From the sequence record NC_031127.1: a stretch of DNA of 64,000 nucleotides, one strand, 5' to 3'. Made by a program: the position numbers and the translations under genes. Positions 38,696 through 45,873 of the stretch are shown piece after piece. Each line of letters begins with the position of its first letter. Positions within the stretch are counted from its first letter, which is position 1. The notes below the pieces were generated by a model, which searched no databases, was not told the origin of the DNA, and was given only the letters and a program-made list of their open reading frames with translations.

Positions 38696-38702
38696 TGAAA
38701 TG

Positions 38703-38735
38703 ACCTCACCTTCGGGTGGGGTTTATTTTTTTTTG
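38703..38735 (+). terminator. Intrinsic terminator (cUUCGg loop)
   Basis: acctcacc-ttcg-ggtggggt plus T tract. Confidence 0.8.
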
Positions 38736-40105: not shown

Positions 40106-40142
40106 GTCCTACTCCTTCGGGAGTAGGACTGTTTTATTTTTT
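40106..40142 (+). terminator. Intrinsic terminator (cUUCGg loop)
   Basis: gtcctactcc-ttcg-ggagtaggac plus T tract. Confidence 0.85.
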
Positions 40143-40153
40143 AAGGACTGTCG

Positions 40154-40681
40154 ATGACTACTTTTATTGCGGGCAAGAACTACCTCGCCGCAGACCGTGC
40201 GGTAATGAAAAACCGAATGGTATTTGAAGATGCGAAGATTCGCACTATCAAAGGACGCATCGCGTACTTCTTTGGTTCAGAGCATCCCACACCAGACGAA
40301 CGCAAGTTGCTGGAAAAGAACATCTACGATTACATCTTCGGTAAGCAGAAAGCCCACGAGGCAGCAGAGTTGTGGTTGCTGCACTTCATGGAAAGCAATA
40401 CGCTGGTTGTGATGACCCGCAAGAAGACGCTGACCTTCAGTGCTATCTCACGGCTTGCTGCGTGGTCGCCGGAGCTGGGTGCCCCAACACGCCACACAGG
40501 ACTTACCGTAACCGAAGACCTGCTTGAAACACCCGTCGTTTATGGCTCGGGTGCAGAGTTGGCACGGGCAGGATGGGCATGCGGATTACAGCCTGAGAAC
40601 ATCATTCTCATGGTACAGAAAATAGACCCGATGTCAGGGCATGGCTGCGATGTGGTTTACAGAGAGGGCTTGCGAAAATGA
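40154..40681 (+). CDS. Ntn-hydrolase, HslV/proteasome-beta-like peptidase
   Basis: M-TTFIAG (N-terminal Thr), LAAD, KIR, VYGSGAELA, KIDPMSGHG. Confidence 0.7.
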   Translation: MTTFIAGKNYLAADRAVMKNRMVFEDAKIRTIKGRIAYFFGSEHPTPDERKLLEKNIYDYIFGKQKAHEAAELWLLHFMESNTLVVMTRKKTLTFSAISRLAAWSPELGAPTRHTGLTVTEDLLETPVVYGSGAELARAGWACGLQPENIILMVQKIDPMSGHGCDVVYREGLRK

Positions 40682-41226
40682 GTACCGTTTCTATTGCTGG
40701 TTTCGTTGTGAATGGTGTGGTCTACGTCAACACCGCTGTTCAATCCATGCACCTGATGGCACCGTACAACCCTGAGGCGGGTTTCGATAAACTCGGATGG
40801 TGGTTCCCGAACGATGGGCAGGATAAAATTAGTGACATCTTGGTTAATGGGGATGACTGCGAACGCCATGAGGACATTACCTACTCCGGTAGTGTGCTGC
40901 GTCACGATGGGCGATTCTACGACGTTAAATTAGCTGGGCCAAACTACCGATTAATTTTCCTCCATCAACCGACCCCCGTGATGGTCTTTCCAGCCGACAC
41001 GGAATCATCGTTTGTGGCGACCTTTATCGAGCACTTGTCCTTGCACCCCGACTTGGACACCGAAGGGCCTGGGTGGAGCGCAGAGCGTATCATGAAGATA
41101 CTGTCGTGCTTCGCAGGCTGTCACAACTTCAAACCTTTCATGACTCTGGATGAACTCAAAGCCAAAGTCCAAGCTATGCCGGAATGTAAATTAGCGCCAT
41201 TCCCCCGCCAAAGAAAACCGGAGTAG
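40678..41226 (+). CDS. Hypothetical protein, possible degenerate Ntn-fold paralog
   Basis: 182 aa, coupled to the previous gene; similar strand/helix spacing but lacks AAD and GSG. Confidence 0.6.
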   Translation: MSTVSIAGFVVNGVVYVNTAVQSMHLMAPYNPEAGFDKLGWWFPNDGQDKISDILVNGDDCERHEDITYSGSVLRHDGRFYDVKLAGPNYRLIFLHQPTPVMVFPADTESSFVATFIEHLSLHPDLDTEGPGWSAERIMKILSCFAGCHNFKPFMTLDELKAKVQAMPECKLAPFPRQRKPE

Positions 41227-42591: not shown

Positions 42592-43158
42592 ATGAAGTTC
42601 TGGGAGCGTTTTTGTCGCTTGTTTAAAGATGTCCCTGAGGCCCAGTCTGACGGTGACCGTTATACCCAAATCGTGCGTGACTACTTCAATGCAGGTAATC
42701 ACAACGTCGTGGAACTCTGTGATGCTATTGGCATGACACCACGCTCACTGTACTTTGCGGTTAACGACGACAACGTACGGGCGAACATTCTGCCCCGCCT
42801 CCCTGAAAAGATGCGGATGGAATTGCGTGATGAACTGACCGCGCGTGCGTTCAGTCGTCAGGCCGTCTCGTTAATTCGTCCGAGCACCGCGAAGTACGAT
42901 TTCGAAAACCTCAATGAGTTAATGGCACACGTACACCAGTTGTTCGAAACCTACCGCCTCGAACGTGGCGAGAAAGTGGACACCTCTATTAAGGCGTACA
43001 TCCACTCCCTTACACCACGTACCGTGCGTATCGCCTTCGTAGGCGGCGGTCACGAATTCAATGTGGGTATCATTGAAGGTATTAACGTTGTGCAGCAAAA
43101 CCTGCTTATGGTGAATTATGGAAAACTTAACGCCCGTGGAAATCGTCAATGTTTTTAA
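42592..43158 (+). CDS. Hypothetical protein with a possible HTH
   Basis: NVVELCDAIGMTPRSLYF resembles an HTH recognition pair. Confidence 0.65.
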   Translation: MKFWERFCRLFKDVPEAQSDGDRYTQIVRDYFNAGNHNVVELCDAIGMTPRSLYFAVNDDNVRANILPRLPEKMRMELRDELTARAFSRQAVSLIRPSTAKYDFENLNELMAHVHQLFETYRLERGEKVDTSIKAYIHSLTPRTVRIAFVGGGHEFNVGIIEGINVVQQNLLMVNYGKLNARGNRQCF

Positions 43159-44863
43159 CCGTTATGTCCACGGTCAAGAACTGGCAAAAAAGATGTTGGC
43201 GATTGCTCTGCGTAACCGCGTACGGGTAGCACTGCTACCCCTCGGTGAACGTGACAGTGTTCGCAAACAGAATCTGTTGTTACTGGGGCCAACTGGCTGC
43301 GGTAAAACTGCGTTGATGCGTGTATTGAAGACGCAGTTTGGTTTACCCGTGTTAGAGCTGGACATGACAGGCTTTTCTGAGACGGGCTACGTGGGGCGTA
43401 ATCTCAATACCGTGGGGACGGACTTACAAACCCTCACGCGTTCAATCGCTTTGCCGGACTGGTACGTAGAAATGCGCACCGGGATGCAGCTCGAAAAAGA
43501 CGAGCAGCGCTATACCCGTGAAGAACTCAAAGCGTTAGAAGAAAAAGAGTACGAAGTGGAAAGCGCTGCACGACAGGCGGAATGGGATGCAGGCCGTGAT
43601 GCTAAAAAGCAACACGAACAAACGCTGAAAGATTTAGGCGTGTTCCCGGACGACGATACCTACAATCATTATCGCATGGTCTATTACATGCGTGCGTTTT
43701 TAGTGGGGTATCATGCGTTAAAGAACCTGCCGTACGACGTCATTGATTTCGCGGACATTGAAATGATTCATGGGCAGAAGCTCATTGATGTCGCGAAGAC
43801 TGTGGTTGGTCTTGTCGAGAAGATGGCTGGCAGACCGATCAACAGTATCGATGATCTCAATGAAGATCTCAGCGAGCGCACCGATGAGATGATGGAGAAC
43901 AATCCTGCCTTGTTGGGTGAGTTCATGGGACTGATGGCCTACAACGAAGTGTTGGAAGCCATTATGGAACTTGGCACCGATCGCCTCAGCAGTAACCCGG
44001 CGGCGGCCTGTGTCTCCTCCAGCGATTGGTACGACGTCGCGCACTCTTTCGATGAAGCGGATGAACAGGATATCCCGCCAGGCATTGCTTGGCGTCCGAT
44101 GGACTTCACGGAGTTTGCGCTCTACATCTGTGTGATGTTGGTGCGTGACCCGGAAGGTCTGGAGGAAGTCTTCGAAGACTGTGATGACTTCACCCGCTTC
44201 GCCGACAAGAAACTTTGGAGCTACACCATCCCTAAACCGGAAGTGGTGCAGCCTAAAGGGAAGCGTAATGTGTTGTCGAAGAAAGACCTCGACAAGGTGG
44301 CGAACTGTAATGGTCGCGACTTCGTGGAGAACTTCGGGGTGGTGTTCTTAGATGAGATTGACAAACTCATTGAAACGGATACCACGGGAAGGACACACGT
44401 CTCCCGCAGCGGTGTACAGCGCAGTCTGCTCAAGATGGTAGAAGGCGGCTTGTACGCCGGGATTGACACCACGAACATTCTGTTTGTCGGTGCCGGTTCT
44501 TTCGCAGAAGCGCCTGTTACCAAACTGATGCCAGAACTGCAAGGGCGCTTTACCTTGCGTGCCGAGCTGGAACCGTTGGATAAAGAAGCACTGATTGCGA
44601 TTTGTCGAATGGATAGCAGTGAGTTCCATGCAATGGTTCGACTCTTGCGAATCGAGGGTGTGAAAGTCAACTACGACCTTGACACCTTTGAGTACATTGC
44701 AGAGAAGACCGTTGAAGCGAACTCGGTAGATAACCTCGGCGCACGGCGCTTAGCCGCGATTGTCGAAGCGTTGTTCCAAGACGCGTTGTACGAACCCAAC
44801 AAGTACACGGAAAAAGGTTACGACCTGACAGGTAAAACCCTGCGTGCTAAGGAGAAACCGTGA
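43118..44863 (+). CDS. hslU: HslU-like AAA+ unfoldase
   Basis: LTPVEIV, YVHGQELAKK, GPTGCGKT (res 57-64), ETGYVG pore loop, VFLDEIDK, GVQRSLLKMVEG, PELQGRF, NLGARRL. Confidence 0.9.
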   Translation: MENLTPVEIVNVFNRYVHGQELAKKMLAIALRNRVRVALLPLGERDSVRKQNLLLLGPTGCGKTALMRVLKTQFGLPVLELDMTGFSETGYVGRNLNTVGTDLQTLTRSIALPDWYVEMRTGMQLEKDEQRYTREELKALEEKEYEVESAARQAEWDAGRDAKKQHEQTLKDLGVFPDDDTYNHYRMVYYMRAFLVGYHALKNLPYDVIDFADIEMIHGQKLIDVAKTVVGLVEKMAGRPINSIDDLNEDLSERTDEMMENNPALLGEFMGLMAYNEVLEAIMELGTDRLSSNPAAACVSSSDWYDVAHSFDEADEQDIPPGIAWRPMDFTEFALYICVMLVRDPEGLEEVFEDCDDFTRFADKKLWSYTIPKPEVVQPKGKRNVLSKKDLDKVANCNGRDFVENFGVVFLDEIDKLIETDTTGRTHVSRSGVQRSLLKMVEGGLYAGIDTTNILFVGAGSFAEAPVTKLMPELQGRFTLRAELEPLDKEALIAICRMDSSEFHAMVRLLRIEGVKVNYDLDTFEYIAEKTVEANSVDNLGARRLAAIVEALFQDALYEPNKYTEKGYDLTGKTLRAKEKP

Positions 44864-45058: not shown

Positions 45059-45532
45059 ATGGAAAAGAAAACTGAACGTAACTTGATTGAAATCACAGGC
45101 AAGGGCGAAGACAACAACGGCAAGTTCTATTCCGTCGTGTTGTTAGACCAGTCCAAGATGAACGCTAATGGTCGTCAGTATAACGGCGATCTTGCGCATC
45201 TGGTGCGCGGTATCAAACGCATGCCGCGACTGTTCTGTGAAGTTGACCCGTATCACGATTACCGCTTCCAGTTCCCGGTAACCGATGACCGTTCTGTTTC
45301 TGGACCATGTACGGTCGACATGAAAAACGTTTGTGCATCTATCGAGAACATCCGTCACGATAAGATGAACCAGCGTGTGTCGGCTGAGCTGCGTCCGTGG
45401 GGCCCGCAGGCTTCGATGGTGCGTGATCTGTTGGACGGGGTCAACCAGAACGTGACCTTCGGGATGCGTGCGTTGGCAACCCCTGATGGCAAGATTGATA
45501 AAGTCATCACATGGGATTTGTTACCAGAATGA
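45059..45532 (+). CDS. Prohead-protease-fold protein, probably inactive
   Basis: NANGRQY, KNVCASI, LRPWGP, VTFGMRA, VITWD follow the T4 gp21/phiKZ gp175 motif order; catalytic H and S positions altered. Confidence 0.6.
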   Translation: MEKKTERNLIEITGKGEDNNGKFYSVVLLDQSKMNANGRQYNGDLAHLVRGIKRMPRLFCEVDPYHDYRFQFPVTDDRSVSGPCTVDMKNVCASIENIRHDKMNQRVSAELRPWGPQASMVRDLLDGVNQNVTFGMRALATPDGKIDKVITWDLLPE

Positions 45533-45834: not shown

Positions 45835-45845
45835 CAGTAAAAAAG

Positions 45846-45873
45846 GGGCACGGAAGTGTCCTTTTTCTTTTTT
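45846..45873 (+). terminator. Intrinsic terminator (GNRA loop)
   Basis: ggggcac-ggaa-gtgtcct plus T tract. Confidence 0.65.

Follow-up and report, generated by a model that had tools for sequence, protein, structure and literature searches.

What does a phage do with the motor of a bacterial protease when the domain that picks substrates has been exchanged and the tail that activates the peptidase is missing? The question is raised by gp130, an HslU-like ATPase encoded within a 64,000-nucleotide stretch of sequence record NC_031127.1 (the window) from Erwinia phage vB_EamM_Huxley, a jumbo myovirus (genus Machinavirus, 240.8 kb) whose host is Erwinia amylovora. Judged by its sequence, gp130 is a real and conserved motor of the HslU clade that is almost certainly active. 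With moderate confidence, we read it as mainly an autonomous unfoldase or remodeller that has its own substrate selector and would not dock through a canonical tail.

Window coordinates equal Huxley record coordinates minus 62000. The open reading frame (ORF) of gp130 spans 1746 bp and encodes 581 aa that are 100% identical to HUXLEY_130, labelled in the record as 'putative heat shock protein; ATPase subunit HslU domain-containing protein'. The initial annotation of this DNA placed the start at 43445, which is codon 110, the first insert residue and not the start of the gene; its residue numbers are consistent with the 581-aa ORF. The parts of gp130 are laid out as follows.

43118..44863, stop codon included, plus strand: gp130, HslU-clade AAA+ ATPase (ORF; identity to HUXLEY_130).
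43118..43435, plus strand: residues 1–106, N-terminal part of the AAA+ large domain, aligning to E. coli HslU 1–105.
43286–43309, plus strand: Walker A, GPTGCGKT, residues 57–64.
43385–43396, plus strand: pore-1 loop, GYVG, residues 90–93.
43436..44302, plus strand: residues 107–395 (289 aa), I-domain replacement, acidic, predicted all-helical, fast-evolving and confined to the family.
44303..44830, plus strand: residues 396–571, the remaining AAA+ large domain and the small domain, aligning to E. coli HslU 243–412.
44351–44356, plus strand: Walker B, D412-E413.
44546–44548, plus strand: R477 of box VII, ELQGR.
44744–44749, plus strand: R543/R544 of GARRL.
44831..44863, plus strand: residues 572–581 and the stop codon, a short C-terminal end of G-x-x-L-R and a variable tail.

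In a phmmer search of all PDB sequences, the best match of gp130 was S. aureus HslU (7.5e-49), with E. coli HslU at 4.9e-43; ClpX was the second-best match at about 1e-24. The HslU matches always fell into two pieces, residues 1–105 on E. coli 1–105 and 399–562 on 243–412 (1g4a_E). From this two-piece alignment, D412/E413 of gp130 correspond to D256/E257 of E. coli HslU and the excess amounts to 156 residues. These results bear out the earlier observations that Walker A (57–64) and GYVG (90–93) fall at E. coli numbering and that Walker B is displaced from 256–257 to 412–413 by some 155 extra residues. Residues 1–106 also align with S. aureus HslU 22–124, and the alignment offsets put R477 and R543 at E. 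coli positions 325 and 393. The distance from the pore loop to Walker B is 322 aa in gp130 vs 156–190 aa in ten cellular HslUs.

The features of an HslU were thus found in the motor, which is 30–40% identical to bacterial HslUs: an AAA+ module with Walker A and B, GYVG, the box VII arginine and the sensor-2 arginine, and an insertion between pore loop and Walker B, where E. coli 106–242 is the counterpart of gp130 106–398. The TIGR00390 hslU profile matched in two stretches (1.1e-59, 202.5 bits), below the NCBIfam equivalog cut-off of 362.45 bits, and TIGR00382 (ClpX) gave 119 bits against a cut-off of 371. The profile phrog_4339, annotated 'unknown function', matched at 4.6e-204 and covered residues 1–578. 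Since gp130 lacks three features that define HslU, namely a score above the equivalog cut-off, a homologous I-domain and the C-terminal tail, it is called HslU-like here.

A search of 5.8 billion proteins returned 24 full-length relatives of gp130 (572–586 aa) down to 42% identity, from Erwinia and Salmonella jumbo phages and from ~240-kb contigs in enterobacterial isolate assemblies. Together with Huxley they form a family alignment of 25 full-length members. On average, the commonest residue accounts for 80% of a motor column, and 113 of these columns do not vary at all; within residues 1–106 this applies to 46 of the 106 columns. Walker A and B, G90-Y91-x-G93, E473-L-Q-G-R477 and G541-A-R-R-L545 are the same in 25/25 members. 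Because the HslU match reaches 7.5e-49 and the features are common to 24 relatives as distant as 42% identity, they are not the product of chance. An IMG/VR scan with the family alignment gave six family loci, and the remaining matches were ClpX-like genes. More distant members of phrog_4339, among them EarlPhillipIV gp129 and RAY gp116, have other inserts.

The insert of gp130 is about 289 aa long, compared with about 137 aa for the E. coli I-domain, a ratio of 2.1–2.2. The first description as a 'doubled' I-domain was therefore right as to length, but its two halves are unrelated to each other, and internal duplication was rejected in favour of replacement. Neither phmmer nor MAFFT aligned the insert to any HslU I-domain, in agreement with the lack of resemblance first reported. 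That claim was followed up by structure prediction and Foldseek comparison of residues 105–400. The AlphaFold2 model, computed with the family alignment as input, had a predicted local distance difference test score (pLDDT) of 81 and a predicted template-modelling score of 0.69, and was composed of 14 helices, one of 39 residues, and a single 3-residue strand. Foldseek found no PDB match and no HslU chain for the model (best E 1.4, template-modelling score (TM) at most 0.22), and in BFVD its only match came from the family itself (8.8e-20). When a protein search was scored solely on residues 107–395, it returned family members only, and a Pfam scan of the insert gave no domain. On the strength of the PDB, BFVD, region-only and Pfam searches, a known domain was rejected.

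As structure and sequence searches found only the family, the insert is, within the reach of these tools, an orphan domain in the I-domain slot. By alignment and by predicted fold, it is a replacement of the cellular I-domain and unrelated to it. Its net charge is −27 and its isoelectric point 4.5. Its rate of evolution is about double that of the motor: the commonest residue averages 51% of a column, 11 columns are invariant, and identity to Huxley across the relatives runs from 42% down to 21%, compared with 53–77% for the motor. In the cellular enzyme, it is the I-domain that recognises substrates, SulA among them, and that is able to plug the pore (PMC4106860, PMC7849044). By analogy, a different substrate range for gp130 would follow naturally from its orphan I-domain, which offers a new candidate substrate-recognition fold.

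At the other end of the protein, gp130 finishes in ...GKTLRAKEKP. All 25 members end in G572-x-x-L-R576 followed by 1–12 variable residues. Alignment with cellular HslUs showed that the family stops 12–14 residues short of the conserved cellular end, which reads ...DLSRFIL, ...DLSKFIL or ...ERSQYEL among the retrieved sequences. The distance from Walker B to the C-terminus is 169 aa in gp130 vs 186–189 aa in cellular HslUs. The absence of a DLSRFIL-type tail, noticed at the outset, thus belongs to the family as a whole and is no truncation peculiar to Huxley, because all members share the G-x-x-L-R ending with variable residues after it.

In cellular systems, HslU's C-terminal tail inserts itself between protomers of HslV and turns the peptidase on, the aromatic residue at E. 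coli HslU 441 (Phe441) is strictly conserved in prokaryotes, and the loop before Pro315 also contributes to the HslV contact (PMC4106860, PMC6429459). The tail has no counterpart in gp130, so canonical activation of host HslV, already doubted in the initial annotation, is unlikely on sequence grounds. The family-invariant P466 of gp130 aligns one column before E. coli Pro315 by HMMER and MAFFT, with a loop of similar length. The similar length of the loop before box VII, together with a motor 30–40% identical to bacterial HslUs, would be expected if gp130 were an ordinary HslU that activates host HslV and merely has a larger I-domain. Nevertheless, the last 12–14 residues, including the activation-critical aromatic, are absent, and the profile score is 202 bits vs the 362-bit equivalog cut-off. 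Moreover, if gp130 is nuclear like its homologue gp116 of Erwinia phage RAY, it may not meet host HslV. We consider such an ordinary HslU very improbable.

Tail loss and a score below the curated cut-off might also be signs of a decaying, non-functional relic of a captured hslU. Salmonella phage JN03 (MT799840.1, SPN3US-like) keeps only a short, unannotated N-terminal remnant of the HslU-like gene, which suggests that the gene was lost in the JN03 lineage. Decay of gp130 itself is, however, hard to reconcile with an intact full-length frame in at least 25 relatives from several genera, with 113 invariant motor columns that include every catalytic motif, and with an insert that retains a confident predicted fold. 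We give the idea of a relic hardly any credence.

Whether gp130 works alone or feeds a peptidase was judged from the genes around it and from how they are distributed. The following features bear on this point.

40154..40681, plus strand: gp125 (175 aa), probable divergent HslV-family (proteasome-beta-like) threonine peptidase, by profile, AlphaFold2 and Foldseek.
40678..41226, plus strand: gp126 (182 aa), no known domain, 4-nt overlap with gp125.
Huxley record 1–474, outside the window (L006:1-474): gp1, second HslV-family paralogue, at the very start of the genome, phrog_1040 at 2.5e-36.

Both Huxley records label gp125 'hypothetical protein'. It is encoded 2.4 kb upstream of gp130 on the same strand, with four genes separating the two, and its match to phrog_1040 'peptidase HslV family' reaches 2.7e-10. 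No more than 13 relatives came out of a full HMMER scan of 1.84 billion representatives, and the family has diverged to about 23% identity with its catalytic residues kept. In its alignment M1-T2-T3, D14, G131, G133 and D158 are invariant, K28 nearly so, and S132 is the usual residue; the profile positions D14, K28 and G131-S-G133 were assigned from the invariant columns of the family. The family profile hit T. brucei HslV (4hnz, 1.7e-5), with the D-R, K and G-S-G positions paired. gp125 thus has the N-terminal Thr after Met and the equivalents of Asp17, Lys33 and G-S-G that characterise HslV and proteasome beta subunits. Its AlphaFold2 model had a pLDDT of 88.7, and the top Foldseek hits of the model were the HslVs of five organisms (E 1.3e-7 to 1e-5, TM 0.56–0.60), followed by 20S beta subunits. 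On the basis of phrog_1040, the conserved residues, the 4hnz profile match and the model with its Foldseek hits, gp125 is probably a divergent, active N-terminal-threonine peptidase. The Pfam and NCBIfam HslV/proteasome models did not recognise gp125 or its relatives. A search of the PDB with the single sequence or with a narrow 5-sequence profile gave no HslV; the wider family profile alone reached it.

For gp126, no PDB or Pfam match was obtained, and its candidacy as a second proteasome-like subunit was rejected (hhalign probability 0.1, no PDB hit). It always accompanies gp125: both are present in the lineages L090, L091 and L092, and both are absent near the ATPase in Caitlin and SPAsTU and from Kwan. 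The two genes have been gained and lost together across lineages, independently of the HslU-like gene, and gp126 may be the real partner or regulator of gp125. Relatives of the gp1 type occur in 62 phage records, among them those of SPN3US-like jumbo phages, where the type is widespread, and of 40–50-kb Klebsiella, Proteus and Escherichia phages; for the small phages, no HslU-like match was among the matches listed, with no genome-wide check.

With such a peptidase nearby, gp130 might be the ATPase of a phage HslUV-like two-part protease that feeds gp125, perhaps with gp126 or with gp1, through a replacement docking interface. The HslV fold of gp125, with the N-terminal Thr, Asp, Lys and G-S-G kept at ~23% identity, would suit this role, and the invariant P466 is one column from E. 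coli Pro315, which belongs to the loop that touches HslV. The bacterial hslVU operon has the peptidase gene first and the ATPase gene later. The gp125–gp130 order mirrors it, with no intergenic terminator between the two, and the same synteny is seen in Huxley-type phages, L090, L091 (metagenomic or isolate-borne lineages, like L090) and EarlPhillipIV. Because the peptidase-first order recurs in these four lineages, it suggests that gp125 and gp130 derive from a captured hslVU operon.

Against a two-part protease stand the absence of the tail from every member and the distribution of the genes. A whole-genome hidden Markov model scan of Kwan found no HslV-like ORF of either type, and its HslU-like gp148 is full-length and tail-less. 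Caitlin and SPAsTU have no gp125 or gp126 within 12 kb of the ATPase, and a gp1-type gene lies elsewhere in them. Conversely, the L092 lineage (210–224-kb contigs) keeps gp125 and gp126 in a conserved block with no HslU-like gene at the locus. The sole HslV-like gene found in RAY, the divergent gp56 (E 5e-11), is 36 kb from gp116. It has Ser for the N-terminal Thr of the family and C-S-G-N-G for G-S-G (L094:62-610), and may use a different nucleophile or be inactive. The gp130–gp125 linkage is thus missing in Caitlin, SPAsTU, Kwan and RAY. In addition, many phages with HslV-like genes gave no HslU-like match among the matches listed, phiEaH2, Asesino, Stratton and SPN3US not having been checked genome-wide. 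As the distribution in Kwan, Caitlin, SPAsTU, RAY and L092 argues against an obligate gp130–gp125 pair, we regard the two-part protease as possible, though doubtful.

Autonomy of gp130 is favoured because Kwan has the ATPase without an HslV-like ORF and because gp125 travels with gp126 and not with gp130. The initial annotation had left a choice between a phage peptidase and stand-alone action. A candidate for the former was found in gp125 (with gp1), and the distribution leans towards the latter. As an autonomous unfoldase, gp130 would assemble as a hexamer and thread substrates through its pore, with the helical domains ringing the pore entrance and choosing phage-specific substrates. It would no longer dock on or activate an HslV peptidase in the canonical way, and gp130 and gp125 would be what is left, in diverged form, of a captured hslV-hslU operon without forming an obligate pair.

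By analogy with RAY gp116, gp130 would act inside the phage nucleus. Huxley is among the phages covered by PMC10299810, in which the core genome of nucleus-forming, chimallin-encoding phages was defined. RAY gp116 co-localises with phage DNA and is likely inside the nucleus (Prichard et al. 2023, PMC10299810), and that paper classes it as an accessory, not core, HslUV-family protein with its role unassigned. On this analogy, gp130 probably works inside the phage nucleus. Since the phage forms such a compartment and the homologue is likely within it, there is a hint of dedicated remodelling or turnover in a nucleus-like compartment.

Several points weigh against an autonomous gp130 in the phage nucleus. 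A non-canonical docking surface on gp130 is possible. The HslV-like then HslU-like gene order is found in four lineages (the Huxley group, L090, L091 and EarlPhillipIV), at least one HslV-like gene is present in 5/6 of the lineages examined, and gp125, whose catalytic residues are intact, is the first gene of the putative transcription unit that includes gp130. The ATPase and unfolding activities of gp130 are predicted from motifs only. Nuclear localisation was seen for RAY gp116 only, whose motor is 30–34% identical to that of gp130 and whose insert and C-terminus are different.

The neighbourhood offers one further possible partner.

45059..45532, plus strand: gp132, short S80 prohead protease paralogue (Peptidase_S80 at 2.9e-7; phrog_7478).

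gp132 matches phrog_7478 'head maturation protease' at 3.4e-55. In Huxley, Caitlin and SPAsTU, a short S80-like gene adjoins the HslU-like one, and in Kwan it lies upstream, so gp130 might take part with gp132 in head maturation, for instance as an unfoldase of scaffold or inner-body proteins. The Peptidase_S80 match of gp132, however, covers only positions 88–175 of the 229 in the profile, RAY gp116 is found with replicating DNA and not with capsids, and adjacency of the genes may reflect a conserved gene block. To our knowledge, no AAA+ partner of S80 prohead proteases has been described. A role in head maturation therefore appears improbable. As separate observations, phage pEa_SNUABM_43 has an extra gene annotated as prohead core protease that has no counterpart in Huxley, and Caitlin and L090 carry an extra gene of 234–258 aa at the same place, again absent from Huxley.

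A bolder and rather unlikely proposal joins gp130, gp125 and gp126 into a phage-built, proteasome-like machine in the phage nucleus, coupled through a new interface, in which the acidic I-domain would select specific proteins. If it were true, this machine would destroy specific, perhaps DNA-binding or host-defence, proteins, and would represent virus-invented, compartment-specific proteolysis. AAA+ unfoldase biology rests on two add-ons, a substrate-picking domain and a peptidase-coupling element. The virus has kept the HslU motor almost untouched, swapped the first for a larger domain not seen elsewhere and deleted the second, which makes gp130 a natural case in which to study how an HslU motor functions without docking through the tail.

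The genes from gp125 to gp133 share one strand, and their junctions are short or overlap. The remaining features of this region are given below.

38702–38723, intergenic: terminator-like hairpin.
40106..40129, plus strand: terminator-like hairpin with a 10-bp stem and a T-run, just upstream of gp125.
42592..43158, plus strand: gp129 (188 aa), overlapping the start of gp130 by 41 nt; phrog_11712.
45841..45866, plus strand: terminator-like hairpin with 11 pairs and a T-run, after gp133.

The three strong hairpins (38702–38723, 40106–40129 and 45841–45866) are intergenic, with 9–11 pairs, 4-nt loops and T-runs, and appear to mark transcription-unit borders in the gene block. No terminator-like site was found in the intergenic gaps between those at 40106 and 45841. 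gp125 to gp133 could possibly form a single transcription unit bracketed by these two hairpins. A sigma-70 promoter scan gave 8 sites vs 8.2 expected and was uninformative; phages of this type use their own RNA polymerases. Only in Caitlin and Kwan does a gp129 homologue immediately precede the HslU-like gene, and gp129 itself gave a weak, sub-threshold hit to DUF6744.

Near-complete jumbo-phage contigs of 210–244 kb with gp125 and gp130 relatives were observed in many assemblies of Salmonella, E. coli and Shigella isolates, for example the 243.8-kb contig of L091 (GCA_009474245.1). These virulent jumbo phages seem to travel along with bacterial isolates.

The analysis also corrects existing annotations. 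Close relatives of gp130 go under the labels 'HslU-like ATP-dependent protease', 'DnaA' or 'hypothetical protein', and gp125 is unannotated in Huxley. ORF121 of Salmonella phage pSal-SNUABM-04 (L005:7965-9698) is 97% identical to gp130 and is annotated 'putative DnaA protein'. The genome paper of this phage states that no HslU subunit is encoded (PMC7823757). Both that statement, which is wrong, and the 'DnaA' label are annotation errors.

Compared with known systems, gp130 is closest to bacterial HslU/ClpY (E. coli, H. influenzae and S. aureus; 1g4a, 1g3i and 6kww), with which it shares the clade, the motif set, the same N-terminal start without an extra N-domain, and an accessory domain at the same insertion point within the large domain. 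It differs from HslU in having an acidic, all-helical insert of about 289 aa that resembles the HslU I-domain neither in sequence nor in predicted fold, a loop 4 residues shorter behind the VEG motif, no C-terminal HslV-activating tail, and an hslV-like gene, gp125, that is separated from it by four genes instead of adjoining it.

Among phage proteins, RAY gp116 is, like gp130, a long HslU-like protein (569 aa) of phrog_4339 (1.9e-180), from a chimallivirus with the same Erwinia host. Its 30–34% identity to gp130 is confined to the motor, its pore loop reads GYYG, and it has a shorter, unrelated insert (Walker B at 343) and a longer C-terminal region. EarlPhillipIV gp129 (684 aa), which stands for the HslU-like proteins of Derbicusvirus and CR5-type jumbo phages, also belongs to phrog_4339. 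Its motor is 52% identical to that of gp130, it has the same tail-less G-x-T-L-R ending, and about 2 kb upstream there is an HslV-like gene. Its insert is about 100 residues longer and has no detectable similarity to that of Huxley.

ClpX belongs to a sister AAA+ clade. For most ClpX chains, the best-matching stretch was gp130 5–99, and most had a second stretch. ClpX is characterised by a zinc-binding N-domain and an IGF loop and has no I-domain. In contrast, gp130 carries a large insert, has no extra N-domain and has a loop of HslU length at the ClpX IGF site, so that it does not have the ClpX architecture. Finally, HslU1 of T. brucei is an HslU paralogue that does not activate HslV and that keeps the tail and its Phe (PMC4106860). 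It provides a precedent for an HslU-family ATPase that exists beside an HslV without activating it, from which gp130 differs in that the tail itself is gone.

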